DNA of 64,000 nt from Vitrella brassicaformis CCMP3155 (Eukaryota > Protista > Chromerida): assembly GCA_001179505.1 (NCBI GenBank), contig CDMY01000258.1, forward strand, positions 1 through 64,000, in the 5' to 3' direction. The position numbers were made by a program, and so were the translations under genes. Every line of letters starts with the position of its first letter. Positions within the stretch are counted from its first letter, which is position 1. The notes beneath the pieces are model-generated. The model worked only from the letters and a program-made list of their open reading frames with translations. It was not told the DNA's origin and searched no databases. Shown piece by piece: positions 27,720-51,300 of the stretch.

Positions 27720-30700
27720 TCATGTGGACGACAGGCTCTCGACAGGCCCCACCGGCACGAAGTCCTGAGGGTCGAACGGGGGCTCCTCCTCATACTGACC
27801 GCTCGCCGCCGGCCAGTCCTTCTTGTGCTTCTTCGCAGGCACTGGCCGACCCACACCACCACCACCACCACTCACACGCCTGCATGGCCACAGACACACA
27901 CACACACATAGGTCGAAGGCCCCCTTGTTCTTAAGAGGAGCGCATGGCTTCCTACGTACCTTGGCAGCTGCAGCTTCATGACGGGCCCCGTGTCGCCGTC
28001 TTTGTGGACGAAGGGGACGCCCGTCAGCTCGTGGCGTGTGAGGACGATGTTCTGCTGGTCCGTTTGGGAGTCGTCACCATGGTGGCGGAGGTCGGCCAGC
28101 ACGCACACGTCGAACAGAGGCCAGTGGGGGAAGCCGCCAAGCCGAAACGCCTGCATCAATCAGAAGGCAATGCAATGGTGGGAGTGTGAGCGTGGCACAC
28201 ACGTGTGTGCCTCTGTGTGTTGTGTGTACCTTCCATGGCTGTATTGCGTCAGGGAGTGCGAGGTCGACCCCCCTGACCCCTCTGAATGCCCCCTGGATGG
28301 CCGTGTAGGCTTCTTGGAGGCTGTCGAACGTCTCCGGCGGCCGCCCCTTGCACCACTGCTCGTCCTTGACTATCACCTGCACGTCGTCGCACGACGCCGT
28401 CAGGCTCGTCAGCCACACATCGGTCAGCTTGGCCTCTTGTCCGCCATCAGTCAGCACCACGTCGATCTCCACTTGCATGGGCAAAGTCAGCGGCAGCAGC
28501 GGCGCTACGCTCGGCAGAGTGACGTGCCGCCAGTCGTGTGCAGGGCCGGGCAGCACATCGTCCCCACTGTGCGTGCGCTTGCCCACTGCTGCTCGGGAGC
28601 CCTGGCGGACCGTCCTGGCCTTCGCCTTGGCCTTCGGTCGGGCCGGCTTGGGCGGCGGAAACTGCTTCCTGATCGTTCACACACACACACACACACACAC
28701 ACAGAGGGCAGAAAGGATCAGGTGTCCATCGGCTCGCCGATGGCTGGGTTTGTGTGTGGAGGGTGTCTGTTTGTCTGTTTGTTCACACACTTAAGGAACT
28801 GGACGTGCTCCTTGAGCATGGCGTTTGTGAGGGCGAATGGGCGGTCGGTCATCTTGCCCAGGGGCTCGAGCAGCTTCTTGAGGTACTGCATGAAGGTCCC
28901 CTTGGCGTCGGCCTCCAGCTGCAGCCTCGCCGCCTCGCGGCTGTCCTCACCCTCCAGCGCAGTGCTGCACACACACACACATATACAAGGGCGGGAGAGA
29001 GAGGGAGGCACATACAGACGTGTGGTCAGTGGTCAGTGGTCTCTGCCGTTTACTAGGCGTCTTTGATGATTCTATGTATCAGTTCCAGCTTCACGACCCA
29101 CTGCCCGATGCACTGCAGTGGGGAGGCAGTCAACGCAGGCTGACGACAGACACACACACACATGCATCACATCAACGCACACAGAGGTAATGCCGTGTGC
29201 TGCGTCACTTGCCTCTTTGCGTTTCTTGTTTGCAGCCGCCGTGGGTGTCTGGGGAAAGGCAGCGGTGGGGCTGCCCTGGGGGCTGGCTTCATCCTGACGC
29301 GGCGATGGCGACGGCTCAGGCGACGCGGCGCCGTCAATCTCCATCGGCACAGGCCCATCACCTGCACCTGCCGCTCCTGCCGGCGCAGCTGCTGCCGGTG
29401 GGCTCGCCTCTCCCTCTCCCTGTCCCTCAGGTCTGTGTGGCGGGGGTGCCTCCGGTGCGGCCTTGGCGTTGGCGGTGGCCGCCTGCTGCCGCAGCCGGAA
29501 GTCATCGAATGCCTGCAGACAGACGCCACAACGCAACACACACAAGACACACAAGTTGTGGGACCGGCCGCATGAGGGTGGTTGGTGGTGTAGTGTGTGG
29601 CCAGCTTGCTGGCACACTCAGGTACCTGTCTGAGTTCTAGTCTGTGTGTGGGGTCGTCGCCGAAGAGCTCCGACGAAAGGATGTGCTGCTCACACTCCTC
29701 ACGGAACACACGACCCATCTGTGGGGTGTGGTGTGCAGGCAGGCCGCCCCGGCACACAGGAGTGGATGTGTGTGTGTGTCTCTGTGTGTGTGTGCGGTGA
29801 CCTTGATCTTCTCGCTCAGGTAGTCAATGCGCCACAAACGCTGCAGATGTGCCAACAGAGAGAGATGTGTGGAGTCGTTAATGCGCCAGTGGCGCATTGA
29901 GTGTCTGCCTGCGTACGTACGTCGAACTGTCGCTTCTTGATGTCAGGGCACATGTGTTTGACGGCGTGGAAGAGGTTGCGCCACACGTTGATGCGCGCAG
30001 GGCTCTTGCCCTGACACACACACACACACACACACGGACACACACTCACACAATGAATGCAGTCCACTCCACCGAGGGGGTCGAGGGAGCATGACGTGGT
30101 AGCTGGCTGACTTACAGCTTTGTCCCAGTGGAGGGCCAGCACAGACACGTCGGTCTCGTGCAGCACTGCCTCTGCCAGGGCACCGAACTGACAGAGGGAG
30201 GAGGGGGGATCTCAACCATGGTTCTTCCTCTGCTTGTCTGTTGTTCTGTCTCACCTTCTGCTTGATGTGCTGCAGGTGGTCGCGGGTATCTGTTGCCGGC
30301 CGAGACACCACACACACAAAGACAGACACTTTGTCGACGGGCGAGCCGGTGTCTCTTCCCCTTCCTCCCTCCCTCACCCTCTAGCGCCTGCAGGTCCCGC
30401 GACAAATCAGCGAAGAAGGCCTGGACGGTGGGCGTCGAAAACTGCACAAGGCGCGCAATGGAACACGCAGTTGAGAACCCAACTCACCATTGGGATCCAT
30501 CGAGACCGTCTGTCTGTCTGCCCCGGTTACCGGCATTCGGTCTATCTGTTGGAAGTGCTGCCATAGTGGGACGGTGAGCTGCCCGAGTGAGTCGATGTCT
30601 CTCTGGAAGTCGTCAGCAGCGGCCTTCTCGGAGTCGCTCTCCTCGTCCGACGACCCTTGGCGGAAGATGAAGTCGCTCGGGTCATACAGCAGCTCCTCGT

Positions 30701-31787
30701 CAGTCTCTGCGCACGCGCCAACACACATACAACACCGGTGGGGTGGGGTGGATGGATCTGTGCGAGACAGGTGTGGTCTGCGCCAATTCACCATTTCCTC
30801 ACCGCTGTGTGTGCCCTCGTCGTCGTCATTGTCTTGGCCGCCGCCATTGTCTTTGTTGCCGTTCTTCTCGGCCCGCTCCCGCCGGTCCTTCTCGGCCTCC
30901 TCAAACTCAGCGCGCAAATCGAACCCCAACTCATGCACCTGACAACGGGACACAGGCACCGCACCGCACCGCGTGTGTGTCTGTGTGTCGATGGTCTGTT
31001 GAGTTGACGCACCCACCTGTTCAGAGTCGTCGATGAAGTCTCGGTCCACTTTGTTGACCCGGCCCTGCCTGAGCTCCCGGTAGTAGGAGGTGGGGTCGCA
31101 CGCCATGCTTGTGCGGTTCAGACGCTGCTCGAGAGACGCTATCACGTCCTGCAAACGCGACTCGCCGATGCCAAACATACCCCAGCCCTCTTGCTGACAC
31201 CACACACACACACAGAGAGAGAGAGACACACATGGACATACAAACATGTCAGTCACCACACCATGTGAATGTGCCGACCGTCCCTCCCCATCCCTACCTG
31301 CATAAGCCGTCTCTGCGCCTCCAGCTCCTGTTTGTCGGCCCTCTTGGCATCCTCCGCCCCACCCTGCTCCTTGTTCTTCCCCTCCCTCTCCAGCTGCTGC
31401 GCGAGGGCCTCCCGCTGCTCGCGAAGCTCACGCAGCTTCTTCTCTTCAGGCCGCTCGGGCACCTCCTCATACGCCCCGCCCTCATACTGCTCAGCCAGGG
31501 CGTCACGCACAGACACCACGATGGGCTTGCCGTCTGCTGATCGGAGGGGCCCGAGATAGACGGGGCAGCCGCCCTTGAGCCGGGTTTTCTTGCGTGTGGT
31601 GAGCTCCTCCTCCTCCTCCTCCTCCTCCTCCTCTGGGCCCATGTCGACCTCTTCTTCTTTGTCGTTGTCATTGTCATTGTCATCCTCCTCCTCGTCATTG
31701 TCATTGTCATTGTCGTCTCCCATATCCTCGTCCTGAGTCAATCAAGTGCACACAACACACCAATGCGTCCTGCTTCCCGATACATAC

Positions 31788-32402: not shown

Positions 32403-34201
32403 ATGCAACAGCCGGCGTCACAGACAGCGGCAAGCAGTGCTGCCGAGGCCTCCCAGCAGGCCCAGAGCGGCACACAAGGCGACCAGGAGACGGCCTTCTA
32501 TGAATCGCAGCGACGGGTGGGGAAAATGACCCACATGCACCTACAGGTGGCGGGGGCATGCTGGTAATTGTGTTTGTTTTGTGTGTGTGTGTGAGTGTGT
32601 GTGTGCAGCTGGTATTACACGACTACTGCACGGGTGAGTTTGTGGAGGAGACCCTGGCGGTGCTACCGCAGAGGTTCACGTCGCTCGAGCAGTACCGCAT
32701 GTGCTTCATTCCCGCGGTCAGCCACTGGCCCACATACACAGACAGACAGACAGAGTCCCATCTGTGTGTGTGTGTGTGTGTAGGCTGAGGCCAACATCAA
32801 GGCCGAGATCTACGCGTCCATCTGCCAACTCAACCACAAGCGCCAGCTGTGAGAAAGCAACGAGGAGGTCACACACGTGTGCACCCGTCGTGTGTGTCTG
32901 TGTCTAGTGAGATGGTGCTCTCTGTGTCCACCGAGCGGCGATTTGTCCACGGTCGGTATCAAATCGCCTATCAGTGGGCGAGCAAGGAGGACTTCAAACA
33001 GGACTGCGTGCGGGCGCTCCTCCACACCAACGAGGTGGTGCTGGTCTACGACAGGAGCCTCGACATCACCACCAAATTCGACCTCAAGGTGGCCGACGCA
33101 GAGGAGGGCAGATGGGCGCTGGGAGTCATCGACAAACACAGATCACTCAGCCACTGGTCAGCCAATACAGCGAGCCCACCCCACCATGTGTGCCGGATAT
33201 ATGTATGTGTATATGTGGTTTATCGATCTCCCTCTCTCTCTCTGGGTGTGGTGTGGTGTGGTTTGGTGTGTTGTGTGCAGGGACGACATAGAGGGGTTGC
33301 AGGAGCACGACAGGCGTGAGCAAGACGGGCGCGACGGCCGCGGCAGGGGGCGCTTTCCGGCAGGAGCAGCAGCGGGTGGCGGTGGAGGGAAGGGTCGCGG
33401 CCGCGGGCGGGGCATCGTTAAGGGCCAGCAGGGTCCGCGACCGCCTCGCGGATTCACCGGCCCGCTGTACGAGGGCGAGTCGTTCAACAACGGTGCGGCC
33501 GATGAGCAGCAGGCCACCCCTGGTGACCCCGAGCAGCTGGACATACGGCACCGCATGACGCTGACCGAACTGACCGACCTCGGACAGCCAACCACGGTGA
33601 GAGAGGGCCGGGAGAGGGTGTGGGTCTAATGGGTGTTGTTGGTGTTTGTCCATGCGTCTGATAAACTTGTTAGGTGATCAACTTCTACACGTGGTCTGCG
33701 GCGGTGCCTGCGTTTGTCCAAAACGCCGTTACCAACGTCATGGTCATCCCTCTCGTGCAGGTGGGTGCATTCATGAGATTAGATGCACTTCACCCGTACG
33801 TATACATTCGTGTGGGGCTGTCTGTGTGTGTTGGTGTGATGTGACGCAGATCCCAACATCGCTGCGCGCCGGCCTCCTGAACCCCACCACAATAGGCCCT
33901 GAACTGTGAGCGCAATGCCACCTGACCTGCCAACAGAGCAAAGCCACCCAACGTGTGTGTCGTTCAGTGTGCCGGAGGTGTTGGGTGTGCAAGCGGAGGA
34001 GATCGACAGCAAGGACCAGCAGATCGCCGCACAGGCCAAGCAGTTCCTCGCGGAGAAGTTTCAGGCGGAGAATCCACATGCACAGGTGCTGCCGGTGACC
34101 GACCAGCTGGCCAATGACATCTGCCAAAAACTGAGACTCAATCAAAGCCAGGCCACTGCCGTCAAGGTGACTCTTCCCCTCTCCCTCCCACCTACCACAC
34201 A

Positions 34202-34236
<35 letters not shown>

Positions 34237-35281
34237 GGAAAGGGAGAGAGATCCATGTGCGTGTGTGCGTCTGGTGCAGGAGTGTCTGGTGAACCCCACT
34301 CGCCGGGTGCAGCTCATCCAGGGCCCCCCTGGGACCGGCAAGACGTCCACCATCGCTGTCATGCTGGCTGCCCTCGCCCTCTGCGGCCGCCGCACGATGG
34401 CCGTCTCACACACAAACATCGCCACTGCTGAGGTAAACAAGGAGGGAGGGAGGGAGGGAGGGACACTGCACGCATCCACACGTATCTGTGTGTCCATCTG
34501 TCCACGTGTCAGATAGCGCGGAAGTTCCTGACTCGTTTGGTGCGGCACACCGACCCTTTGGAGCTGCTGATGGAGAAGCCGAAGCTGCTCGTGCCGCAGT
34601 CCTACCCGCTCGACGACAGGCGCATGCGCCGCGCGCCGAAGACACACGAAGTGGACCACTTCCTGCCGTCGCACATTGTCCTGGTAAGTCTGTCTGCAGT
34701 GTGCGTGTGTGTGTGTCCGTATGGTTGCAGTGGTGCTGTGTGTGCGTGTGTGGCTGCAGGTTGGTTCGGAGGGCCGAGTAGACACGCGTGAAGGCATAGA
34801 CGCCATTTGGGTATGCGCGTGTGCCAGGGGGGACGGAGGGAGGGAAGAATATGCATTCATGGGGTGGGGCGTTTGTGTGGCGTGTGTGTGTTGTGTTGCA
34901 GGCCGACCATAGAATCCACATGCTTCAGGCGAGTGTGCGGATCATTTTGGAGCTGCTCCGGGGCATCAAGGGCCGGTACAGGCCCAGCACCATACAGAAC
35001 TGGATGAAGCTGCCATGGACCGTTGACACCACACAGGAGGACCGTAAGACATTCATCCACACACACATCCACACACACACAGAGGGATGGGTGTGTCGAT
35101 GGGTACGTTTGTGTGTGTCAGGCATTCCGTTTCCCGATGGTGCAGCTGAGATCTACGCCGCGTTTGACAAGTATCTCAGGCTGATACGCATCAACGGACC
35201 ACCGCCCAGATGGTACACACACACATACACACACACACACACAGATGCACACGTGCGTGTTGGTTGTGTGTCCTGTGTATA

Positions 35282-35313
<32 letters not shown>

Positions 35314-38300
35314 TGTGTAGGGCTGCGCACCAGAAGATCGAGACGTGGCCTCGTACCATCACAGACGAGATTCTCTTCCTGGGCGTCCTCTTCCTGGTGC
35401 CTTAAATGCATATACACATATCACACCAAGGGAGAGTGCGAAGAAGGGGAGGCGAGAAAAGGCCAACCGACCTGCATCGTGAACCCATGGTTGGTCTCTT
35501 GTCGCTTCTCATTGTCCAGCAAGCCTTCGCTCGCCGCTCCCAACTCCCCGATAGGCCTCTTGTAACAACAACACCCCAACACCCCAACACCCCCCCACAC
35601 AGAGAGAGAGAGGGATTCGTGTTTTGTTTATGTCGGTTATCAGGGCGAGAGGACTGACGATGTGCTGCCGATGATGTACCGGACGATGGTGTGGTTCAAC
35701 TGCCCCGGGCGTGTGCCGCCCCCCACAGAGGAACCCCAGCGCATCGAGATTTGCGAGAGCCCTGCACCACACATCATGTAGCGATGCGATCGACGCACAC
35801 TTACACACTTACACGCACATCGTGGTGGCTGGAGAGGAGATGCTGTGGGTGTGGTTGGTTGTCTGGTGCCGTGTGTGTCACTCACACATGGATGGCCATG
35901 ATATGGATGCAGGCCGAATCTGGTCGATTTGATGGCGGAGGATACCTCGGCTGGCGTGCTGGAAGAGGCGCTGGAGAGGATCCGCTTGCTGCTCTACCGC
36001 AGACTCGTGGACGTCAACCAACGCAACTTCTCGCGTAAGCAAAAGGGGATGGATGGATGGATGGATGGTCGACTCGTATGTGTATGTGTGTGTCTGTGGT
36101 GGTCAGATCGTGTGTTGAACAAGATGTTGGTGGACAGCGCGTCAGTGTGCTTCTGCACCACAACAGTGGTACGGTAGTTACGTGCGTGTGCACGGCGGGT
36201 GGGTGCTGCTGGTGGTGTGTCTGCATGCCCTCCCTCCCCCCTCCCCTCCCCGTGTGTGTCCTTGCGCCATTCAGGCATGCAGACGATTGTTCAACGACAT
36301 GTGGTTCCACACACTCGTCATCGACGAGGCCTGCCAGGTCACTCTCACTCTCATCCCCCCTCCCGGACCGACCCCCATTGCCCATGGTGGTGTGTGTGTG
36401 TGTGCGTGTGTGTGTGCAGGTGTTGGAGAGCGAGAGCCGCACGGCGTTCAAGGCGTGTTTGGAGGCGGCCATTCTGGTGGGCGACCACAAGCAGCTGGGG
36501 CCGATTGTCATCAGCAACGCGGCGTCGGAGAGCGAATTCAAGCGGTCGCTGTTCGAGCGGCTCGTCAGCAACGGACACCCCTTCATCAGACTGCAGACAC
36601 AGGTGGGTGTGAACGAATGCAGTCAAGACAGAGAGAGAGAGACGCATGTGGTCCATCCATCCATCCATGTGTGTGTGTGTGGGTGTCTGTGTGTGCAGTA
36701 TCGCATGCGGCCGGAGATTGCTGCCTTCTCTGTCCGGGAGTTCTACGAGAGTAAGCCCGTACTCACACACACGTGCGCAGGACAGAATCGACACACGATG
36801 GGCAGCTGCAAATGTGTGTGTGTGTGTGTGTGTGTGCAGATGCCGTCGAGAATGCCGGCAACGTGACGTCGGAGGAGTGGTCCAAACCGTGGCACTCCTA
36901 CAAGTCAGCAGCCCCCCCCTCACACACACACACACACACAGATGGCCACCATGTGTGTGGTGAATTGGTGCACATGGCAGGCACGGTCTGTTCCCGCCAT
37001 TCTGTCTGTTCGACACGAGCAACGTGTCGCGCGACCTGGTGCACGAAGCCCACGACTTGACCTCCACTTTTGCCAACAGCAAGATGAACCAGGGCGAGGT
37101 CGACGTCATCATCGCCCTCCTCTGCTGGCTATACGACACCTACGAACACCTCTTCCCGCCCATAGACACCCACCTCGAGGACACCGACCTGCCCATCACT
37201 GCCAATGTCACGCCGATGGACATCGGCATCATCGCGCCTTACCGTCGGCAGGTCCGGGCGGCTGCCATTGGGGCCACACAGACTTCACACACTCGTGTGT
37301 GTTGTCCATGTGTGGGTGCAGATTGAGTTGATCCAGGAGCAGCTGGCGGCGAGGATCCCGCGGATGCTCAACTACGTCACCATTGCCACCGTTGACGCCT
37401 TCCAGGGCCGCGAGAAGAGCATCATCATCTTCAGCGCCACACGAGCCAATGCACACGGTAGGTAGGGTGCACACACATGACCACAACACACGCACGGATG
37501 CACTGACAGACACTGATAAAATAAACACATCACACCCTCCTGTCTGTGTGTGTTGATGATCAGGTGAGATTGGCTTCACCAGCGACGCCCGCAGGCTCAA
37601 CGTCGCCCTCACTCGAGCCAAACACTCCTTATGGGTACGCCCCCCGGCACACACACACATGTGGATGGATGGATGGATGGACGGATGGACACAGTAATGT
37701 CCGACAGGCAGACGGTCTGCCAAGGTGCCCTTGTGTGATGTGACCTCCCTGCTGCTGTCTGTCTGTCTATCTATCTGTGTACGTGTGTGTCAGGTGATCG
37801 GCCACATGAAGACCCTCGTGCAGAACAAATGCGCGCGCAGGCCGATGGGGTCGCTGTGGTGAGAGGGTCTTAAAGAGCATCACGCCACACATATCAAAGG
37901 AGGCAGCCAGCGATCAAGCTGCATCGATCCCTCTATGTCTGTGTGTGTATGTGTGTGTGTGTGTGCGTGTGTGTGTTGACTGACTGACACACAGGGAGGA
38001 CCTGCAGTCCCACGCGTTGGTCATGGCGCAGCGCACCCAGGCCTCCGATGACAACCTCCTCTCAGCATTTGTCGACGTGGCCCATGAGCCAAGGCTCATG
38101 GAGTTCGTCGGTATGTGCACACACAGACACACACACTCACACCCAGGCACATCCACCTGGCCCCACCCTCTCTGCGCCTGCAGGACTGTCAGGGAGCAGT
38201 GGGGTGGCCCGCCGTGACCCCCTGATGACGACCATCAAGTCTTCCTCGCTGCTGGGAGCCTTCACCTTCCCCGTGCTGATGTCGTCCCACGCCATCAACT

Positions 38301-41300
38301 GGCTCATGGCCATGGCCAGGGGCCACTTTGACGTGGGCACCATCAACAAGATCAAGGTCTGCATCAGAAATCTCGCCAGGGGCAACCAGGATGTCCGTCG
38401 TCGCAAGCTCCTGATATCCGCCACTCAGAGGCCGTAGGCCTGCATCAACGGGCAGCAGGGGCCACAACACAAGACAAGACACACAGGTGGCGTGCCCTTT
38501 GTGTGTGTGTGTGTGTGCGTCTTTACGTGTGGGATCGAATCTATCACCGCCAGCAACATCGAAGACCTGTTGATCTTCGAGGAGGCCGTCCAGCAGACAC
38601 CTTTGGTCATCATCTGGAGCATGGCGCTCGACGACGCAACCAACGGCCAGGCAGTCCGAATTTGGACCATCGAACACAGAACAAACCGCACACGTGAGCG
38701 ACGCGAGCCACCGACCGACCTAACGGTGGTGTTGGGTGCATCACAGAGCTCTGTGTGTGTGTGTGTGTGTGTGTGTGTCAGGGTCGTCCTACGACTACGA
38801 CGGCAGGATTCTCGCTTGGACTCATTTCAACGTCCACACGAGCGAGTACCGCAGGGCGTGTCTGGCCCACGGCGACCTCGAGGACATCAAGAGGCGCCCA
38901 GACCGCCCCCTGCCCAACAAGGACGTCCAGATCAACCCCGGCTGGACAGACAACCGTGAGTGGCGCGCGGTGAAGAAACCTGACCATAGGAGTGCGTCGG
39001 CAGCATCGGGTGGTGACAGCTGGGGTTCGCCGGCGATTGAGAGGCTCAGCGGGGCTGAGTGTGAGGTGAGGGGCTACGAGATGGAGACCATCGACATCGA
39101 GGACGCCGAAGGCGAGCCACTGCTCCCATTCCTCCCCACACATCGCACCTTCCACCGAATGAACAGGTCAGTCAGTCAGTCAGTCTGCCCCCACCGCCCC
39201 ACACCCAGGCGCATCCACCCTGTGTGTCTGGTTTCTTTTCCTCGCCGTCCGGCCAGTGAGTTCTTTGGCCACTTCGTGGAGCTGCTCAAGCACGTGTGTG
39301 AGTCGGCCGGTTCGTCCTCATCTGGCCCGCTCGCCGACAGGCCCGCCGCCGAGCTGGAGCTCTTCCACGTGTCGGGTGGCCACCGTGCGTGGCCCCCGGC
39401 CCTCGACTACCGCCTGCAGCGGATCGCTGCCGACGGTGGGGCCTCGCTGTTCATCATGGGCACCGCTGGGGCCGGCAAGACCAATGTCCTCATGGCCAGG
39501 TGAGTGGGTGAGACAGGCAGCCTGAGGCAGGTGCATATGGATGGATAGATGGATGGCGTGTGTGTCGCAGGATGCGTCAGGTGGAGCAGGAGTGGGTGGT
39601 GCGTGAGCATGTGGGGCTGCGGCCGCTGACCGAGCACGGCTGGGGCGGTGAGGGGGGGTGGCGGCAGGGAGACGACCCCGAACAACTCAGAGAGGACGAC
39701 CCCCGGATGCTCACACAGCCCACATGGAATGACTCTGATGGCGACAATGACGCACAGGCAGCGCCTGTCCGTCCAGTCAATCCCTACCCCGCGCCGTCCA
39801 TTCTCCTCGTCGCAGCCGACGACGCCCTGGCAGACACCCTCCGGCAGCAACATGAGCTGCACCGAAGCTGGAGTCGCCTCTCGGCCCCCTCGCCCAGCAA
39901 GCTCATCAACGACGGCAAGGCGCAGCAGTACGACTGGATTTTCCAAAAGAAGAAGGACGGCCTGCCCCTCTACGTCCCGCCGCGTGTCGAGGCCCTGCGC
40001 GACGCCATCAACAGCCGCATCCACCGGGTCAGCGGCAACCCGCCAGATCCCATCAGGTCGGAGCCGCTGTTCAGCCGGCAGGTGTTCCGGCTGCCTGAGG
40101 GGCGATCAGTGTGCTCAAGGGAGGCGGGGGCCGCCGACGACGGTGCCGGGGCTGGGGGAGGGGCGGGGGCGGCCGATGACTGCCATCCTGCCATCGTGGG
40201 GCCGAGGGCGCTGCTCGTCTCTGTCGACGGTACACACACACACACACACGCACACACAGATGGGAACCTCCCTTTATCACTGTGTGTGTCTGTGTCTGTA
40301 TGTGTGATGCAGAGAATCTGATCGACCCGTTTTTGGACCATCCCGACCTCCCTGGTCGTCACAACCTGTACCCTCTCGCGCGAAACATCCGACGAGTCGA
40401 CATACGAGTGGGTACACACACACACACACACACACAGAGTGATGCCCACTGTCGCTGGACAATGCAGGACGAGGTGACGTTCCGCGAGTTCTTCGAAGGC
40501 TTTTGGCCCCACATCAAGTGGTATATGAACGGGTGGCTTAGGGAGCTCCAGCACAGCAGGAGCGGCCGCATCATCGACATGGACCTGCCCGACGACATTA
40601 GTGCGGAGGACGTGACGCGCTGCGGGCTGGCCGAGTACCTCACCCACCCAGACGGCACCTACGATTCCAAACACGAGACTGGACTGGTGAGTGTGTGCGG
40701 TGGGTCAAAACAGAGAGAGAGAGAGAGAGAGATGGGTGGGTGCGTCCGTGTTGGGTGTGTCTGATATGGTCAATTGGTCAATCAGGGGTATTTGGTGTGG
40801 AGTGAGATCATCTGTTCCATACCAGCGCACCTCTCCACCACCCAGCGCAAGAAGGACGAGAAGCGGCTCGAGGCCTACCTCTTCCTCCGCTGGGGCACCA
40901 CCCGCCCCCGAATCACATTCGACAACGACGGCAACACCGCCAGCCCTTCGCCCTCTTCACCATCAGTATCATCATCATCAGCCGCAGCAGCAACAGCAGC
41001 AGCGGAGGGGCCCACAGTGGTGGACGAGGACACCTACGGTCAGTACGGCGGGAACCCCATGGCCCTGACGGCGAGCGAGTACCTGCAGCAGGCGGAGCGG
41101 ACGGGGCGGCCTGCGTATCTGTCTCGGGGCGACCTGGTGGTGGTGTACGCCATGTGGCGGCAATACGCCCAGATGAAGGAGAACAGGGGCAGGGGCGAGT
41201 GGGACAGAGCCGACCTCGCCACACATGCACTGGTCGGTCAGCAGACAAAGAAAGAGGCGATGGTGTCTGTGCATATGGATGGGATGATCCGTCTGTGTTG

Positions 41301-43858
41301 CACATGGGTGACATGGAGGTGTGGGTGTGTGTCAGGTGTTGCTGTCTGCTCATGCTCGTCGTGCGTATCGTGGGAGGGTGTTCGACTACGTCTTCTGCGA
41401 CGACGTGGACTTGTGGGCGCCAGTGGAGGTGGCCGTCGCATTCCACCTGGTGGGCAGCAAGCGACGCATCGCCATGGCCGTCTCGCAGGTACGCACACAC
41501 CCCCCTCCTCCCCCCCTCCACAGCTCATTATTCCAGCGATGGACACTTGCATGGTGCGTCTGTCTGTCGTGTTAGGAGGGCGTGCTCGGCCCGCAGACAT
41601 GCGACAATGTCTTCCCCATGTACTCCAAATTCATACGTACGCCACACACACGTCACCACCCGACAGACAGACGGTATTGGTGCGTGTGTGTGTGTGAAGG
41701 CTCCCGCGCCCAGCTGACGCCGCCGTCGATTCTGCTTCACTCGTGCCGGTCGACCGAGTTCCTGACGCTTCTGGCCGCCACTGTTGTGAAACCTCTGCGC
41801 CGGCTGCTGAGTGGCAAGACGATGCTCTTGAAGAAGGGACAGCTGCACACCGATGACAGCGACCACATCGCCCGGGCACTGTCAGTACCCGCCAACAGAA
41901 GATACAACACCGTCGAGCAGCAGCAGGTGGGGAAGAGGGTGGGGTGGGTGTTGGGAGAGCAGGTGGGGGCATCCATCTATCCATCCATCCATCCATCATG
42001 TGTGTGCAGGTTGACGGGCCCGATGCGCTGCCCGACGACCTGGTCCGTGCGCGGCGGGAAGAGGCCGACACACGTGCCCTGCTGTCACTCCGTCGCCAGG
42101 GGACCTTCCTCAAGCCATCGCTCCTGCTGCTGCCTGAGGAATGGCTGGACTTGAGGAATGTGCCGCACGAGGCGAAGGCGGACCTTCTGTTCGAGGCGTT
42201 CCAGCTGGTGCAGCCCCAGTTCATCGACAGCCGGCGGTCTGTGGGCGACCACACAGGTGGGTGGTGCGCAGAGATCCATGCGGATGGATGGATGTGCTGT
42301 CCTTTGCAGTGGCGATCGTTGTTCGGCGGGAGTACGACGTAAAAATGGTCGCGGAAGCACTGGCAGATATCACTCAGGTGCGGACACACACACACACAGA
42401 GATACCTATACAGACGCAATGATCCCGCCCCGCCCCGCCCCAGGATGACAAGCACAACGGCCGCTGGCGATGGCAGCGGATAAACTGTCACGACAGCGCT
42501 CAACGCTCTCGCCTGCATCTGCGTCACCGCCAGCGGTCGCTCTCGCCAAGCCGCCGGTCTGCGCACTCGGGGTCGTCTCCGGGCCTGTCACGTGCCACTG
42601 TGTCGAGCCGTGAGGGGCCTGTGGCGGGCCGTGACAAGGATGAGCGCTGCGTCATCCTTGTCGAGCGATTCGACGACCTGCTCGCACTCAATATGGAGTT
42701 TGATCAGGTACGCTTAAGAAGGGCGGGAGAAGGAGCAGAGGAGAGGACACGAGATGGATGGATGGATGGATGCTCTCTCTCTCCCTGTCTCTGCGTCTCT
42801 CTCCTCTCCTCTCCGTGTGTGTCGATGTGTCGATAGGTGGTAGTCTACGATTTCTTCTTCCGTTCGGAGCAGCTGGATTTGGTGTGGATGCAGCCGTGGG
42901 TTGGCTGGGTCTTGGAGAGCTTCCAGTCGGGCGTGCCCTTCATGCCCTACGTCCAGCAGTTCCCCGTCGACGTCTCCAACCTCGTCGATGAGCTCCGCCT
43001 TCTCTACGCCATCATACGCATGGCCAGGATCAACGTCAGCTTCATTGAGGTGCGGCACACACACACACACATTGACAACACAGAAAGCCCACATGTATTC
43101 CGATGTCATTTGTGTGTGTGTGTGTGTTGGGGGCCGTGTGTGTCATGCAGTCGAGTCCCGACTCGTCCGTGGCACTGAGCGCCTGGTGGTCGGCCCGGGG
43201 CATCGTGGACGTCCATGAGCTCGCCAATGTCCGCAGGCAGGACCAGCGGGGCCGCCTCGCGCTAGAGCTCAGCGGGTCGCCGCAGAAGCTCTTCGATCAA
43301 CACAAGAGGGCCATCGCCCGGTGCGAGCAAGAGAGCCAGCAGATGAAGCAGCAGATGGAGACGAGCACCCGCAACAACAACACCGGAGCTGCTGCTGCTG
43401 CTGCTGCTGTTGCTGTTGCTGTTGCTGCCCAGCCATCCCGCCCCTCCCGTCCAGCAGCTGCAGCAGCATCATCAGGGCGTGGCGGGCGTGCTTCCCCCGC
43501 CCCATCCTCCATCGCACCCATGGCACCCCCCCGTCCACACGCACCGTACAACGACACCAACAACCGAGACCGAGGCGGCCGCTACCCTGACGATGACCTT
43601 GAGGATCTGCCGATGCCGCCGCCGCCCAGGGACCGTCGAGGTGGCAGTTATAGGTGGCAGCAGCGTGACTTCCGTGACGACTGGGCGGACGACGACAGCA
43701 GTGAGGATGGTGACAGCAGCTACGAGTACAGCCGATATGGGGGCGGCGGGGGTGGGGCGTACCAGAACTCCTGGCAGAACCAGCAGATGAGGGGCGGGTA
43801 TGATGACTATTATTATGGCTATGATGACGACGCGCGGTCGGACTACAGCTACCGGTGA
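32403..43858 (+). CDS. Double SF1 helicase: UPF1/senataxin-like (AAA_11/AAA_12) + probable RelE-like domain + degenerate UvrD/TRANK1-like helicase
   Basis: QGPPGTGKT (34319-34345), VIDEACQ (~36317-36337), LVGDHKQLGP, RSLFERL, LQTQYRMRPEI, IGIIAPYRRQ, TVDAFQGREK, RRLNVALTRAK. Second module: IMGTAGAGKT (~39453-39482), VTFREF, FDYVFCDDVD, LNMEFDQVVVYDFF, ELRLLYAIIRMAR. Splice phases are consistent at the ~10 junctions checked from 35.6 to 41.7 kb. Confidence 0.85.
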
Positions 43859-44355
43859 CTGACGGATACAGTGTGTGACACATAGATACATACATGACCG
43901 ACTGACTGATCTGACTGATTAGTGGGGAGGGACCGGCGCATGCGGTGCATGCACATCGATGCTGCATGCATCGATATATGCTGTTTTGCTGTGTGACGGG
44001 AGTAGCGGGCCCGCGGATCGGGGCCGATGCGTACAGAGTCTTTTACGAGTAGGGGAGGACAGCACCACCTACGTGTGTATGTTTGTGTCTGTCGTTGTGC
44101 TGTCGTCACTTTCGATGCACCGTCGACGTGATCTTACTGCTGCTAGCTGCCTCGGGAGCATTACGGATGGTGTCGGCAGGCAGCCGAAGTGACTTCAGCA
44201 CGATGCACGACAACAGAACAAGCGAATCTCAGTGGTTTGAGAGAGAGACCTCCATGGCAAAATGCGGGAGGCTTCAAACGTGCTTGGTGAGACTGCGACG
44301 TCCATTTACTTGGCCCCCTCGCCCCCCGTCTCAGCTCGCACCCCCCGGCCTAGCG

Positions 44356-47300
44356 ATGAGTTCTGACAACGTCGGGTCGCCCAATGGCGGCTCTGCGTCG
44401 ACGTTTGCCGAGAAGCACCGGCAGCGTACGGAGAAGCTTCGTCAGGACAAGGACAGCCGGCGGGCCAACGAGATAGACAAGATGACCAACGAGCGGCTCG
44501 AGAGAGAGCTCAAGGCCAAGGGCATCCCCACTTTCGGCACCAGGCAGGAGAGAGCGGCGAGGCTCAAAGTGGCCTGCGGTATGTATGCTACTCCCAAGTG
44601 AACCCACAAACACCCGAGAAGCACACACACCTGTATTTCCCTATGTGTGTGTGTCTGTGGCACGCGGCCTGTAGGTCTGCCCGCCAGCAGTGATGCTGAT
44701 GAGAAGAAACCGGGCAAGGCCAAGAAGGGCGGCGTGGTGGAGGAGATCGAGCGACTCAGGCAGCAGAGAGAGCAAAGACGGCGCAAGATGGAGGAGGACC
44801 GCAAGACCAAGGAAGACGAAAAGAGCCACAACGAAGCCATGGGCCTCCCCGGCGACGTCGACTTCCAAAGGATGGTCACGCAGTTCCGGACCGATTCGAA
44901 GAGCGGCAAGGCCCTCTCGCCCATCATGGGACAGGGGGCTGGGGGGAAGGGCTCGTCGCAGGCGGTGGGCATCTGGGTGTGTGTGCGAAAGCGGCCTTTG
45001 AACGACAAGGAGGTGGGGCGGCGGGAGATCGACACGGTCACAGTGGTGAACCCCAAGTGCCACGTGCACGAGTGCAAGTTCAAGGTGGACGGCATCACCA
45101 AGTTCCTGGAGAACCACCACTTCGCATTCGACCGGACCTTCACCGACTCCACACCCACACAAAGCGTAAGAAACAGACACACACATATATTGCCGAATAT
45201 GGATGGGCAGATTCATAAGCCATAAGCCATTCGGTCGGCCTTTGTCTCGTGTGATGTGGTCAGCTTCACGAGTGCTGCAGCAGGCCATTGGTGGACTTCG
45301 CGCTCAGAGGGGGCGGCAGGCGTGCCACCATCTTTGCGTACGGCCAGACGGGGAGCGGCAAGACCTACACGATGAGAGGGATGCAGTCGCTGCTGTGCTC
45401 GGACCTCTATGACGGCCTAGAGGGCAACCCCCACAAGGACGATTTGGACGTGTCGGTGAGCTTCTTCGAGATCTACGGAGGCCGCGTCTACGACCTGCTC
45501 AACAATCGCCAGAGGCTGCAGGTGCTCGAGGACGCTAAGCAGGAGGTGAGGTGGGTGGTGTCTGAAGGGTCCGTCAGGAGCCGGCGGGGGCGTGTTCTTG
45601 TCTGCAGGTGCAAGTGCAGGGTTTGTGTGAGCGGCCTGCCAAGAACGCCAAAGATCTGCATGACATCATCGGTAAGCTAGCTATGCATCACACCTACACC
45701 GTGGCGTCGGTGTCTCATGCCGCGCCTCACCCCGCATGCATCCGTGTGGTGTCTCGTCTCTGCGTGCAGAGTATGGGCACTCAGTGCGCACCACCAAGGC
45801 CACATCCACCAACGCAGGTATGCAGACCAGACACACGTCAGTCACAACAAAAAAATGGAAATCAAGCGCCGCACCCGTGTCCCTCCATACGTCTCTGTGA
45901 TGTGCACACACAGACTCCTCCCGCTCCCACGCCGTGTGTTGCATCGCGCTAAAACTGCCCCGGACCACCCCGCTGCCCAGCCCCCCCGAGAGGAAGCAGC
46001 TGGTGCCGCAGCCCCCACCCGACAAATTCACAGTATATTCGAAACTCACACTCGTCGACCTGGCCGTACGGACGGACACTTAAGCAATAAACAAACAGAC
46101 ACCAGCCAGCCAGCCAGCCAGCCAGAGACAATTCATTCATGTGTGTGCCTCTGTGTGTGCAGGGCAGCGAGAGGGCGCAGGACACGCGGCACCACAACCG
46201 CGCCAGACGAGTCGAGGCCGCAGAGATCAACCGCAGCCTCCTCGCACTCAAAGTCAGTACGTCACCTTACACACACAGACAGAGAATGGATGTCTCTCTC
46301 TCTCTCTCTGTCTCTCTGCAGGAGTGCATCCGTGCATTGGCTGTTGAGAGCTCCAGTGGGCCGCCCGCTAGCCAGGCTGGCGCATCGCCATGGGCGTCAC
46401 CGTCCGGAGCTGGGGGTGGGGCGGGGGGTGGCAGCGGCTCGCACATCCCGTTCAGAGCGTCCAAACTGACGATGGTCCTGCGGGAGTGCTTCGTGTGCAG
46501 CGCTTCCCGCACACTCATGATCGCATGTGTATCACCAGGTGGGTCGGCTGCAGACGTCAGACATAAAGTCGAATGTGCGTGTGTGGTCTGGCTCCATCCA
46601 TCCATCCATCAGGGATGGCGTCGGCAGACCACACGCTAAACACATTGCGTTATGCGGCGCGGCTCAAGGAGACCCCAGACAGTCCCCAGCCAGCAGGCGT
46701 GGCGGGAAGCTCCCCACGGCCACCTCAGTCGGCACCTGCGTCACCCGCCGTGCATCAACCACCCGAGCCAACAGGTAACGAGTGCATTGGCTTAGACCTT
46801 GCCACGCGACATTGTCCCGGCTCGGTTGGTTCAGAGGCCGGTGGTCCCGGATTTCGTCTGCCGCCTCGTGCAAAGTCCAAAGCCGCGGTCGCCCCCTCGT
46901 CCCCCCCAGCCCCCCGCCCTCCCCCTCCCTCCCACCCGGTCAGAGATGCCGACCGGGTACCCCTCTCGCCGATACCCCCACCAAGAGGGTCCAAACGGGC
47001 CGCCGGTGGAGCTGCGAGTCCGCCGCCCCCCGCACCAGGCCCCGCCCCCATCCCCCACGCGGCATCGTCCCCTGCACCCTCCTCATCCACACACGCACCG
47101 GGGAGCAAATCGCCACCAGAGCCATCCGCTTCGTCAGGTGAGACACGGCCATGTACTCTGCTGCTAGGGATGTGATGTCTGTCGGTGCTGCTAGGGGTTC
47201 CTGAGGCGGAGAGTGACGCGTCGCCCAACGAGGGTGAGGAGGAGACGGAGGCCGAGGGAGAGGGAGAGCCTGAGGACGGGAGACACCTGGCGAGGGTGTC

Positions 47301-48019
47301 TCGGGCTGACATGGACTTCCTCAAAGAATCGCTAACGAAGCAAGGGGTGGGTGGGGTGGCGCAGAACACACAGATGTGAGGTGCATGAGAGGCTCTGTGT
47401 TTATCCATCCATCAGATGGGGGAGGCCTTGGCCATCACGGACTCGGAATATCTGGAGGTACGGACACACATCCATCCATCTGTACTGCGATGGACACACG
47501 TATATGTGTCTGTCTCTCGTGTCATCTCTCACAGACTGTGGAGGATTTGTATGAGTGGGAGGATCGCATCACACGGACACACATGAGCACCATGAAGGTG
47601 ACAGACACCCACAGCCAGCCAGCCAGCCAGACAGACAGTATGTGGCCTGCTACAGGAGGACGCCAACATGCTCACCATGGAGGGCGAACTCATGAAGAAG
47701 GTAAATCAACAACAACTCGCCCATCCACAACTGTGGTCAATTGCTTGCGCGTCTGCGTCATGGGCGCAGTTCCAAGATGACGATGGGTACGAGCTTGAGG
47801 ACTACGTGGAGGACATTGAAAAGATTGTCGAGCGCAAGGTGCATCTGTACAAGGGCCTGCTCAAAACAATCAGCAAAGTCAAAACCATCATGCAGCAAGA
47901 GGAGACGTCGTACAAGAAGGTGTGCTGTATGTGGCCGATGGTCGGTGGACGTGCCTATGCGATGGATCGTTGTCTCGGTGCGTGGCTGTGTGCAGGCCGA
48001 GCAGCGAGACAACAAGTGA
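44356..48019 (+). CDS. Kinesin-13 family microtubule depolymerase with an N-terminal SAP-like motif
   Basis: VCVRKRPLN, KVD finger (CKFKVDGITK), FAYGQTGSGKTYTM, NADSSRSHA, LVDLAGSERA, AEINRSLLALKECIRAL, HIPFRASKLT, TLNTLRYA, and a C-terminal coiled coil. Confidence 0.95.
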
Positions 48020-48323: not shown

Positions 48324-51300
48324 ATGAACCTGCAGCTGGGCAAGACGGCGGCTAAAGCCGTCTTTGGGCAAGCTGTCGAGTCGTCGAAGAACGTCATCTC
48401 AAGGATACGCTTCGCCAAGGGGGACGATGACAAGGATCAAACAGGAGAGGAACCAGCCGCCTCACCCGCCGCCGCCGCAGCTGCTGCTGCGGGTACATCC
48501 GCCCATGCATCCATCGAAGCGCCCACCATCACTGATCTGTGCTGCTTGCATGTTTGTCAGCGGCCCCGATAAGAAGCAAGACCTGCGAGGAAGAGGGCGA
48601 TACCGTTGATCTCAAGGCGACTGGCGCGGAGGGCACGAGGCCGTGATCGAGGGCGAGGAGGAGGACGAGTCAGCACAAGCCGACGACCGTGACCGAGTGA
48701 TCACAGAGGAGGAGTACCGCCAGCTGCGGAAGAAGAAGGCGCGGGAGGCCCGGTCGAGGAATGAGGGGCAGGTGGTGGCCCTGCCGGCCGGGGACTGGGG
48801 CGAGGACAACCTAAGGGGGGATGGCTCGGAGGAGAGCGAGAAGCACTGGCGGATACTCAGACGATTCAAGTGCCGCATCTGGAACATTCGGCTGGAGAAC
48901 TTGCTCGAGGACACAAAGACGCAGACGCTCTTCCTCGGTCAGTGCAATCTCTCCTCGCCCCCTTTCTGTCTATCTGCATGTGTGTGTGTGTTTGTCTTTG
49001 TCTCTTGGCGAGCAGCCTTCACGATTGGCGGCACCTTGGAGGAGTTCCGTGTGGTGAATTACAAGGGTGAGGAGCGGGCTGTGTGTGAGGGCTACCCCGG
49101 CACCGTGTTCAAGACGCATCACGCTGATGTCAAGGGTGCGTAGTTGGCCAGAGGGGGCGTACACAGCCGAATCCAATGAGCAACAGACATGGGAGCGCAC
49201 CTTCCACTTGCCTGTCTGTCCCTGTGTGGTGTGATATGTGCACTACTGCAGGCGGTGAGACGATCGAGTTCACGACTAAGCCCGACCTCGAGTGGCGGGG
49301 CTCATATATCGACCTGGAAAACGTACACACACACGCACACACACACACAGACAGACAGACGGCAGCAATGTACTAAGGGCAAGTGACACATACTGTGTGT
49401 CTCCTCTGGGTTGTAAAGGAGTGGCTGAGCATCGACGTGTGGAAGCTCCAGACCCGGGCGGTGAATCAGCTGATTGGCTCGCAGTCGGCGTCGCTCTACA
49501 CCTTTGCCACGGGGTGGGTGGAGCAGGCATTCACCTTTGAGCGGATCGTCAAGAAGAAATCCGTGCCAGCGTACAAAGTCAGCTTCCAGGTGAGTCAGGC
49601 TGACTGACTGACTGAGACAGACAGGTCTGCCGGTTCTCTCTCTGAGCAGATATTGTTCCAAGAGATATACGACTTTGAGCTGACTCTCTGCGACTGGAAA
49701 GTCTCCAACCTCATGCCCCTAGACGTACGCCAACACAGAGACAGCAACACCCGCCCAGAGACATCCAAAGTGTGTCCGTCTGTCCGTCATCATACAGACG
49801 ATGAAGGACCTCATCCAGCGCATCAAAAGAGGGGACATCGACAGCACCGCCGGCAAGAAGGAGGTCTTCTCCCCACTGAGTGACACCAAAGGCGACGACG
49901 AAGAGGGTATGGTGCCAAGACAAGCGGCCAAGAAGGGCCATGGGGAGGAAATGGACGCCATTTTGAAGGGCTTCGACCTCGAGGGCGACGGAGAGGTCGG
50001 TCGGCGGCCCGGCGGGAGGGGTGATGGGCCAGAGAGTGAGGTGGACACGCGGCTGCTGGTGGAGGTGGTCAAGACGGACCCCAAGATGGTCATGAGGATA
50101 GCGCCTAAGGCTGAGAACATGAATGTGATGCGAGTGGAGACCATGCCCAGGTGAGTTGAATCTGCCCACGTGCCTCTATGTGCGCGTGTCTATGTGCGTC
50201 TATGTGTGTGTGTATGTCTATGTGCGTCTATGTGTATGTGTATCTGTGTGTGTATTTGTATGAAGGTACAACACAAACAACCCGTCATGGGAGATGCTTG
50301 GGTGTCTCTACTGGAGGTAGGTCCGTCCGCCAGAGGAGAAGAGAATGCACAGTCAGTCCTTTCTGATGCCTGCCTACCTGCCTGCCTGTGTGCGCTGCAC
50401 AGGGGCACTCCCCACGACTTGGAGAACGAGAGTCTCGAAGTCCGTGTCAAGGACACCTACAGGGCCAACCAAGTTATCGCAGAGGCCAAGATCCCCCTCA
50501 AGGGCATCCTCGAGTACGCCCAGATGGTTCGCCTCCCAGGTGACTCTGCTCGACGAGACGCGGCTCGACGGGCTGGACTTCGGGCGTGTGGAGGGCAAGG
50601 TGGCGGTGGAGAACAAGCCGCGCTACCGGCAGATCGGGAGTGTCATGGAGATGGACAACGACAAGATATACGTCATTGTCAAGGTCGTGAAAATCGACCA
50701 GCTGCACACGTCAGACGAGGCCGACCACATCGACTCGTATGTTGAGGTGACTTTCGACGGCATGGCCAACAGGTCCCGCCACGTGGTGGACTCCCTCAGC
50801 CCGACCTACCAGCACGAGCTGTCCTTTGTGGTCAACCTCCGGAACACGGAGCGGATAAGCGCTGAGGAGGTGCAGAACAAGGGGCCGGTGCACATCGACG
50901 TCTGGGGCAACAGCACGGGCGACGTCAGCAACGAGCACCTTGGGTGGACCACCATCTACTTGAATGAAGTCCTCTTTACGCCTGACGGCAAGGTGGGGTG
51001 GGTGGGCGAGTGAGGCGGTCGATCTGTCGACAACACGGATGTGTGGCCTGGCCTCGTTTGGCTCGTGTTTGGTTTGCAGCCTCGCGAGATGGAGGAGAGG
51101 AAGTTCTACAACAACATGACCAGGAACGAGGAGGAGTACGACACTCGCGTCTTCCACGGCAAGAAGCGATTGAGGCTCCTCTGGGACAGAGACAAAAAGA
51201 AGGAGTCCTTCGTCTACTTCCAGGTGACTAAGCTAACCTTCCCCCCTCTCGTCTGCTCATGTTCTGTATGTATGTCTGCGACTGACTATGTGAATGCCCA

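Follow-up and report, generated by a model that had tools for sequence, protein, structure and literature searches.

A giant Vitrella brassicaformis gene predicted to join a complete UPF1-like helicase to a diverged UvrD-like P-loop module

Proteins that join a UPF1/SEN1-like helicase to a TRANK1-type, UvrD-like module exist in plants and protists, and vertebrate TRANK1 corresponds to the second module only. HELZ2 contains two UPF1-like helicases that flank an RNB exoribonuclease, and PD-(D/E)xK/NERD nucleases commonly adjoin UvrD-like or UPF1-like helicases, as in the NERD-helicases, DNA2 and RecB/AddA. Giant proteins of the UPF1-like plus TRANK1/UvrD-like type occur in several eukaryotic lineages, and to our knowledge none has an established mechanism. 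A survey of the literature on TRANK1 together with UvrD or UPF1 found no mechanistic work; in chicken, TRANK1 has been described among the genes that viruses induce early (PMC8517014).

We analyzed a 64,000-nucleotide stretch of Vitrella brassicaformis CCMP3155 DNA (the window) that contains a gene with the same predicted domain order as the TRANK1-type double helicases, namely a UPF1-like SF1B helicase (helicase 1) followed by a UvrD-like P-loop module (module 2) in one giant protein. The likeness drawn here is one of architecture; neither TPR nor ankyrin repeats were seen in the Vitrella protein, and its module 2 has diverged so far that an exon search against 1.8 billion representatives gave a partial paralogue only. 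HELZ2 would be a conceptual parallel, as a helicase-RNase-helicase arrangement in one chain, if the region between the two Vitrella modules were a nuclease; unlike HELZ2, however, the Vitrella protein has a second module that is UvrD-like and degenerate, and no RNB or other recognisable nuclease domain was found in it. Taken as a whole, the reading that we favor with slightly better than even confidence is that of one gene encoding a UPF1-like motor and a diverged UvrD-like module, which would function in RNA remodelling or surveillance.

In our own exon model, which was restricted to GT-AG introns, 45 exons form a frame of ~2,457 aa without an internal stop (Table 1). The frame starts at the first in-frame ATG downstream of a stop and ends with the stop codon at 43856-58. 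It is flanked by a divergent gene on the minus strand, whose end is near 31741, and by a kinesin gene from ~44.1 kb, with intergenic gaps of at least 500 nt on either side. The gene itself is real and apparently intact, and it is most likely a nuclear gene of V. brassicaformis with a product of ~2,460 aa; the coordinates that the earlier note gave for its giant multi-exon gene were borne out. The exons at 32.4-36.3 kb were modelled without RNA contigs, and a few small ones among them are uncertain; alternative exon solutions exist at two spots of the 5' third (35644-35777 and 36107-36168). Micro-exons of 4, 8 and 19 nt that a gene finder placed at 35.8-36.2 kb were set aside in favor of simpler exons, and an intron that it placed within the RNA-supported exon 41336-41488 was also rejected. 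The N-terminal region carries an RGG box (aa ~163-185), and its two largest exons had no match in Pfam. At the other end of the protein, the tail has a high content of Ala, Ser, Arg, Asp, Gly and Tyr, finishes with RGG/YG-type repeats, and gave nothing significant against Pfam.

Table 1. Features of the helicase fusion gene, with positions given in the window
Feature	Position	Strand	Evidence
Whole gene, 45 modelled exons	32403..43858	+	Stop upstream of ATG; open GT-AG exon chain
N-terminal region, aa 1 to ~340	32403..34166	+	Own gene model and translation; exons modelled without RNA
Helicase 1, complete UPF1-like SF1B, aa ~340-980	34280..37858	+	Pfam, PDB phmmer, motifs, X2 contig
Linker exon, continuing the helicase C-terminal extension	37995..38110	+	Read from sequence; in phase with both neighbours
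Middle orphan region	38184..38693	+	Exons 38184-38433 and 38554-38693; RNA-like contig depth
Module 2, diverged UvrD-like (SF1A) P-loop module, aa ~1290-2222	39257..43049	+	SF1A profile tests
RNA-supported exon chain	40468..43099	+	One 2,230-nt X1 contig and several X2 contigs
C-terminal tail, 235 aa, low complexity	43151..43858	+	Translation and composition

The first module contains motifs I to VI, all canonical and in order, at aa 362, 696, 723, 764, 916 and 949 of the spliced model (nt 34322, 36317, 36480, 36699, 37391 and 37596), with motif II reading DEAxQ and motif III being of the GDxxQL type. Single exons matched Pfam AAA_11 (31.4 bits, exon 34280-34432) and AAA_12 (38.7 bits, exon 37322-37456), both above the gathering score of 27 bits; additional partial Pfam matches were obtained on 36420-36602 and 36982-37251, and AAA_30 also matches this module. 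Among the solved structures, a phmmer search of PDB ranked UPF1/NAM7 nearest (E 2.4e-10), followed by ZNFX1, SEN1, AQR, DNA2 and IGHMBP2. These data confirm, at the level of sequence, the earlier assignment of a complete UPF1-like SF1B helicase with canonical motifs. The motif set and the AAA_11/AAA_12 domains are common to helicase 1 and the UPF1-like group (UPF1/NAM7, SEN1, ZNFX1, AQR, IGHMBP2 and DNA2). In contrast to UPF1, the Vitrella protein has a different N-terminal region and extends for ~1,450 extra residues C-terminal to the helicase; neither a CH zinc-knuckle domain nor an SQ region was seen in it.

The second module is far more diverged. It comprises a Walker A motif (GTAGAGKT, nt 39459), a II-like CDDVD (nt 41393), a IV-like SCRS (nt 41738), a V-like NMEF (nt 42687) and a VI-like YAIIRMAR (nt 42999). 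None of the database searches gave a significant match for it: Pfam returned nothing on all long plus-strand frames at 38-43.9 kb, and exon-wise searches of Pfam, NCBIfam and PADLOC at E<=10 yielded nothing beyond weak Pfam and NCBIfam matches to UvrD-helicase and AddA (E 0.03-0.35), which covered the Walker A only. With E. coli UvrD and RelE as single sequences, a test of low power, Walker A motifs alone were detected. A narrow profile, built from 80 gammaproteobacterial UvrD sequences of 66-98% identity, was also tried and discarded, as it saw the Walker A only and its long hhalign alignment was junk elsewhere. Using a purpose-built, IMG/VR-based profile of 83 UvrD/Rep/PcrA sequences, hhalign aligned module 2 colinearly with SF1A helicases, starting at the Walker A and continuing over motifs II, IV, V and VI. 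For the Walker A, the match had P=2e-5, and for motifs II to VI a marginal P of ~0.02 was obtained in a separate colinear alignment of 363 columns, which pairs CDDVD with VDEfQD, SCRS with NYRS, NMEF with GLEF and YAIIRMAR with YVaiTRA. The II-VI score was reached by 8 of 390 shuffles, and the score together with 300 columns by none of 190. Module 2 scored 25.3 against the SF1A profile, compared to 13-15 for non-helicase parts of the same protein; with the sequence reversed, a raw score of similar size was obtained on a short stretch. Since helicase 1, a true SF1B member, also scores against this profile, the assignment of module 2 to SF1A rather than SF1B rests on motif IV, the segment preceding motif II and an insert of 250 aa between motifs IV and V. 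In an independent hmmsearch, aa 1782-1833 aligned to the SF1A-specific segment immediately before motif II. In these alignments, module 2 would follow UvrD/Rep/PcrA in the colinear order from Walker A to motif VI, the pre-motif-II segment and the long IV-V insert.

Module 2 differs from UvrD/Rep/PcrA in its 1B insert of ~400 aa and in having lost the Glu of motif II, the Gly-Asp of motif III and the register of Arg in motif VI. In the hhalign alignment, motif II has Asp in place of Glu and becomes Asp-Asp; motif III is lost, with other residues where Gly-Asp would stand; and in motif VI the column of the Arg is occupied by Met, directly preceded by an Arg. The UvrD-type catalytic residues (Asp-Glu in motif II, Gly-Asp..Gln in motif III and Arg in motif VI) are consequently not found in module 2 as a set; the Lys-Thr of the Walker A and the Arg of motif IV are retained. 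Because of these three changes, module 2 is probably an ATP-binding pseudo-helicase, and its inactivity would follow from motif changes placed by an alignment of low confidence. For the second UvrD/TRANK1-type module that had been proposed, support for a UvrD-like layout comes from the targeted SF1A profile and from none of the database searches, and the catalytic motifs are degenerate; judged from these motifs, the name "helicase" overstates the evidence. A canonical first motor next to a catalytically degenerate second module suggests a division of labour between a motor and a nucleotide-gated regulator.

Between the two modules lies a region of ~150-170 aa, which probably extends into exon 38782-39166 and is divided by a 120-nt intron that opens with an in-frame TAG. 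On present sequence comparisons it is an orphan, without a recognisable family. Its two exons, each searched alone, had no match at E<=10 in Pfam, NCBIfam or PADLOC, libraries that contain many RelE/ParE/HigB/YoeB models, and the region had none in PDB sequences (phmmer) or the ESM Atlas. For its first exon, no homologue was found in 5.8 billion protein clusters, toxin-sized proteins included; tblastn of the region against a set of 72,556 plasmids in which RelE/ParE toxins abound gave no toxin match, and its hhalign score against a RelE-proper profile fell below the shuffle mean. These searches were of low power for a domain that is divergent and split and whose halves were searched separately. 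Of the middle alpha/beta domain described previously, the existence of two coding exons stands, and AF2 modelling of the first exon alone reached a pLDDT of 58. Inspection by eye suggests a strand, two helices and three to four strands, an order that fits RelE/ParE, NTF2-like and PD-(D/E)xK/NERD-like folds equally well.

The headline proposal had been a RelE/ParE-fold endoribonuclease in this region, forming a sensor-effector whose helicase would load onto RNA, or unwind it, for cleavage by the RelE-like domain. We regard this as improbable. The strand-helix-helix-strands pattern read by eye, the basic residues before the second strand, a His-Arg that ends a late strand and the two helices that AF2 places, at low confidence, where a RelE fold expects them would agree with it, and helicase-RNase-helicase layouts such as that of HELZ2 do exist; however, every profile, structure, cluster and plasmid search described above was blank, and the fifth strand and helix contributed by exon 38782-39166 suit other folds equally. 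The RelE claim is therefore unsupported by any of these tests, whereas the gene model of this uncharacterised family is well supported. Of the RNA sensor-effector fusion, the presence of two P-loop modules in one gene is supported, an RNA-related role is plausible, and RNA cleavage by RelE found no support. As module 2 also looks catalytically impaired, the label "helicase-RNase-helicase" does not fit what is encoded here.

A PD-(D/E)xK or NERD-type nuclease-like domain, which would make DNA or RNA-DNA hybrids the substrate of the protein, has a still lower probability. One strand has Asp-Asp at its end, and ~16 residues on comes a strand with Glu-x-Arg (aa ~1129-1148), giving a spacing that resembles D...(D/E)xK, and such nucleases are known to pair with SF1 helicases; against this, the NERD and PDDEXK models were unmatched, and the position of the catalytic Lys is occupied by Arg, so that the likeness is one of pattern only. 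That the middle region is a genuine nuclease of either kind, RelE/ParE or PD-(D/E)xK, with a working UPF1-like motor on one side and a pseudo-helicase that binds ATP on the other, is, on balance, unlikely. If it were true, the protein would be a single-chain eukaryotic "helicase-nuclease-switch", an effector of RNA surveillance or antiviral defence that parallels HELZ2 or the nuclease-helicase defence proteins of prokaryotes; this would offer a first mechanistic handle on the uncharacterised TRANK1-like double-helicase family, which would thereby become a candidate for RNA-surveillance or defence effectors.

The favored reading of one gene further requires that helicase 1 and the downstream part belong to the same transcript. 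Splicing is directly documented in the 3' third, where transcript-like contigs confirm eight GT..AG introns (40687-40785, 41233-41335, 41489-41575, 41637-41699, 41927-42009, 42257-42309, 42378-42443 and 42708-42836) whose joints are absent from the DNA runs X3 and X4. After coordinate refinement, the frame is open through this entire RNA-supported chain. Support for splicing from RNA-like contigs is confined to this chain plus scattered exons. Further upstream, 37318-37456 lies within an X2 transcript contig that extends beyond it, and the bins of 38100-38699 have RNA-like contig depth; this depth is zero in both RNA-like runs over 37700-38099, which includes exons 37794-37858 and 37995-38110. 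No contig in either RNA-like run joins helicase 1 to module 2. A scan for a spliced-junction pattern, of a kind expected in cDNA only, gave no match. The phase consistency claimed in the earlier note held in a reading by hand of the six junctions that lead from helicase 1 downstream (37457|37564, 37634|37794, 37858|37995, 38110|38184, 38433|38554 and 38693|38782). Since the non-coding gaps at 37.4-38.8 kb are all phase-consistent and measure 73-159 nt, we infer a single gene.

The alternative, which we consider about as improbable as the PD-(D/E)xK reading, is that of two adjacent genes, the first encoding a UPF1-like helicase that ends with TGA at 37860-62 and the second starting from an ATG near 38022 and comprising the orphan region and module 2. 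Intron 37859-37994 splits a Trp codon (TG|G), and its retention would halt the helicase frame immediately at this TGA and leave a plausible free-standing helicase; this, the ATG inside exon 37995-38110 and the zero depth at 37700-38099 in both RNA-like runs are in line with two genes. However, the zero-depth stretch includes an exon that the second gene itself would need, and the gap between the two genes would be ~160 nt, compared to at least 500 nt for the real intergenic gaps in the window. Moreover, both donor and acceptor of intron 37859-37994 fit the local splice consensus, six consecutive junctions keep the spliced frame open, and the GC3 of exon 37995-38110 is of the coding type in the spliced frame.

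Considering the single-gene reading, the protein would consist, in this order, of an RGG N-terminus, the UPF1-like SF1B helicase, the orphan region, the diverged SF1A module and a disordered, RGG/Tyr-rich tail. The UPF1-class motor, together with tails of the RGG and Tyr/Gly-rich type, makes an RNA-related role plausible, and we infer RNA as the substrate; any role assigned to the middle region is likewise conjectural. RNP remodelling or surveillance is the most likely function of the protein, with RNA as its target and single-stranded DNA as a less likely one; helicase 1 would be a 5'-3' motor and module 2 a nucleotide-binding module with a regulatory, clamping or scaffolding function and slow or no ATP hydrolysis. 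The RGG and Tyr-rich segments could supply RNA binding or recruitment to granules.

Relatives of the downstream part are scarce. Homologue searches with a 187-aa exon and with 38784-39497, under a length filter that leaves out giant proteins, returned nothing. No match was obtained with two exons in the ESM Atlas, with one module 2 exon in a phmmer search of PDB, with four pieces in tblastn against plasmids, or in a metagenome scan based on the alignment of the window with the paralogue. It is highly improbable that the part downstream of helicase 1 is a relic, that is, a decaying duplicate of a double-helicase gene that is transcribed without a function of its own, as the degenerate catalytic motifs of module 2, the lack of relatives in very large databases and a partial module 2 copy in the genome might suggest, given that ~1,450 codons stay free of stops over 19 exons, the GC3 signal follows the coding frame all along, splicing is precise, and the Walker A and motif layout are kept. 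The partial copy of module 2 is located elsewhere in the genome, at L001 9349-11178. In a phmmer search with exon 40765-41280 against the 1.8 billion representatives, the sole match was P0001, a 365-aa annotated fragment of the partial paralogue.

The giant gene and both of its P-loop modules are real. The window is GC-rich and eukaryotic, with numerous short introns packed with TG/CA and GGAT repeats. To assemble the exons, we sought the best GT-AG chain by dynamic programming, using a small codon and splice-site model trained on exons confirmed in this analysis, and then corrected the outcome by hand at four places. The resulting model comprises 45 exons encoding 2,457 amino acids without internal stops, separated by introns of 42 to 247 nt. 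It begins with the ATG at 32403 (+), the earliest in-frame ATG past a stop, and the frame is closed by a stop codon at 43856-58, matching exactly the limits proposed in the earlier note (32403-43858). Its 3' limit is fixed by the adjoining kinesin gene. Between 40686 and 42837, transcript-like contigs of the RNA-like runs X1 and X2 carry eight GT..AG joints, none of which was found in the DNA runs X3 and X4. A single 2,230-nt contig joins nine exons with the frame open, and further RNA contigs lie over exons at 37.1-37.6, 38.1-39.1, and 39.8-40.0 kb.

The UPF1-like helicase 1 and the downstream part very probably belong to a single gene. A split into two genes would agree with the finding that no RNA contig spans from one part to the other, with the zero contig depth of the linking exons (37794-37858 and 37995-38110) in X1 and X2, and with the immediate stop that retention of intron 37859-37994 would place in the helicase 1 frame. 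However, phase is kept at each of the six junctions from 37457 to 38782, where the splice sites resemble the consensus, and the spliced frame stands out by its GC3. The largest non-coding gap in this interval measures 159 nt, as against at least 500 nt for the real intergenic gaps flanking the giant gene.

Helicase 1 was confirmed as a UPF1-class enzyme. Single exons matched Pfam AAA_11 at 31.4 bits and AAA_12 at 38.7 bits, each above the cut-off of 27 bits. Among PDB sequences, UPF1/NAM7 ranked first (2.4e-10, with a 61-aa exon as query), followed by ZNFX1, SEN1, Aquarius, DNA2, and IGHMBP2. Motifs I, II, III, IV, V, and VI are all canonical.

General searches with module 2 were empty except for weak Walker A matches to UvrD-helicase and AddA, and a targeted SF1A profile was therefore built from 83 sequences, namely, Escherichia coli UvrD and Rep, four gammaproteobacterial UvrD proteins, and 77 UvrD/PcrA-like proteins from IMG/VR (26-50% identity). 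With hmmsearch, the Walker A region aligned to this profile (i-E 4e-4), and residues 1782-1833 aligned separately to the SF1A-typical segment leading into motif II (i-E 0.07). With hhalign, the Walker A part was recovered (P=2e-5), and a second alignment of 363 columns extended from the segment before motif II through motif VI, pairing CDDVD/VDEfQD, SCRS/NYRS, NMEF/GLEF, and YAIIRMAR/YVaiTRA, identical to the assignments previously made by eye. The score of this second alignment was reached in 8 of 390 shuffles, and the score together with 300 columns in none of 190. Against the same profile, module 2 scored 25.3, four other, non-helicase stretches of the protein 13-15, and helicase 1, a true SF1 control, 23-36 in shorter pieces. 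Because of these colinear alignments, shuffles, and in-protein controls, similarity of module 2 to SF1 helicases appears supported at a modest statistical level. Motif IV, the segment before motif II, and the 250 aa inserted between motifs IV and V suggest the UvrD-like (A) subtype. In the 363-column alignment, motif II carries Asp in place of Glu, motif III lacks its Gly-Asp, and the Arg of motif VI lies out of register. Lys-Thr of Walker A and Arg of motif IV are kept. Module 2 is probably a pseudo-helicase, and the simplest reading is that it would bind nucleotide with little or no hydrolysis.

Plants have giant proteins in which a UPF1/SEN1-like helicase and a TRANK1-type UvrD-like module are fused. 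Such uncharacterised proteins are the closest kind by architecture, a kind already known though unstudied. Unlike an ordinary double helicase, the Vitrella protein has a degenerate second module, an orphan middle region, and RGG/Tyr-rich tails. A literature search on TRANK1 found no mechanistic paper; TRANK1 is reported to be induced early by influenza in the ileum of chickens (PMC8517014). For one module 2 exon, database searching gave a single relative, P0001, a 365-aa annotated protein on contig CDMY01000624.1 (GCA_001179505.1). Its annotation is largely out-of-frame junk over a partial module 2 paralogue, the pieces of which match residues ~1467-1507 and ~1626-1788 (numbering of earlier gene model v2) with 56-79% identity by piece and 87% DNA identity over 180 bp. 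This paralogue probably represents a pseudogene or a fragment of a gene.

The middle region shows, by eye, a strand, two helices, four strands, and a helix; the intron dividing it (38434-38553) begins with TAG. Both exons gave no match in Pfam, NCBIfam, and PADLOC at E<=10 or, by tblastn, in 72,556 plasmids, and the first exon none in PDB, the ESM Atlas, or 5.8 billion clusters, where the length window takes in free-standing toxins. The AF2 model of the first exon alone was poor (pLDDT 58). The pattern fits a PD-(D/E)xK/NERD-like fold, with Asp-Asp followed ~16 residues later by Glu-x-Arg, and is equally compatible with an NTF2-like fold. A RelE-proper profile scored under the shuffle mean. 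The proposed RelE-fold, RNA-cutting effector is thus so far without support and is unlikely. One X2 transcript-like contig matches the window from 38289 on, which is not a splice site, and the 255 letters ahead of that point in the contig do not resemble the window; it may be a paralogous transcript with a common middle region or a chimeric contig.

RGG/Tyr-rich segments are characteristic of proteins that bind RNA or belong to granules. The RGG box and the tail composition favour RNA as the putative substrate.

Features of the giant gene, its neighbours, and its paralogue
Feature	Position	Strand	Basis or remark
RGG box	aa ~163-185	+	Translation of gene model
Middle ('RelE') region	Exons 38184-38433, 38554-38693; probably plus start of exon 38782-39166	+	Gene model
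C-terminal tail, 235 aa			Rich in Ala, Ser, Arg, Asp, Gly, Tyr; ends in RGG/YG-type repeats
Divergent multi-exon gene	28200-31741	-	Upstream neighbour of giant gene
Kinesin gene	44100-48000	+	Next gene downstream; exon 45294-45545 matches Pfam Kinesin motor domain, 4e-21
Partial module 2 paralogue	L001 (contig CDMY01000624.1) 9349-11178		Matches module 2 only

The minus-strand neighbour carries, near its 5' end at 31313-31741, a long acidic stretch of Asp, Asn, and Glu, gave no Pfam match for three exons, and shares with the giant gene an upstream region of ~660 nt, which precedes ATG 32403. Further downstream, an exon at 50528-50992 (+) with a C2 domain (Pfam C2, 3.7e-09) belongs to another multi-exon gene. 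Short intronic GTCA-type and CA-type repeats (39167-39185, 42384-42402, and 43056-43071) attract many unrelated contigs from the DNA and RNA-like runs. Depth spikes there 6- to 25-fold and DNA contigs break, and these motifs are therefore dispersed genome-wide in introns.
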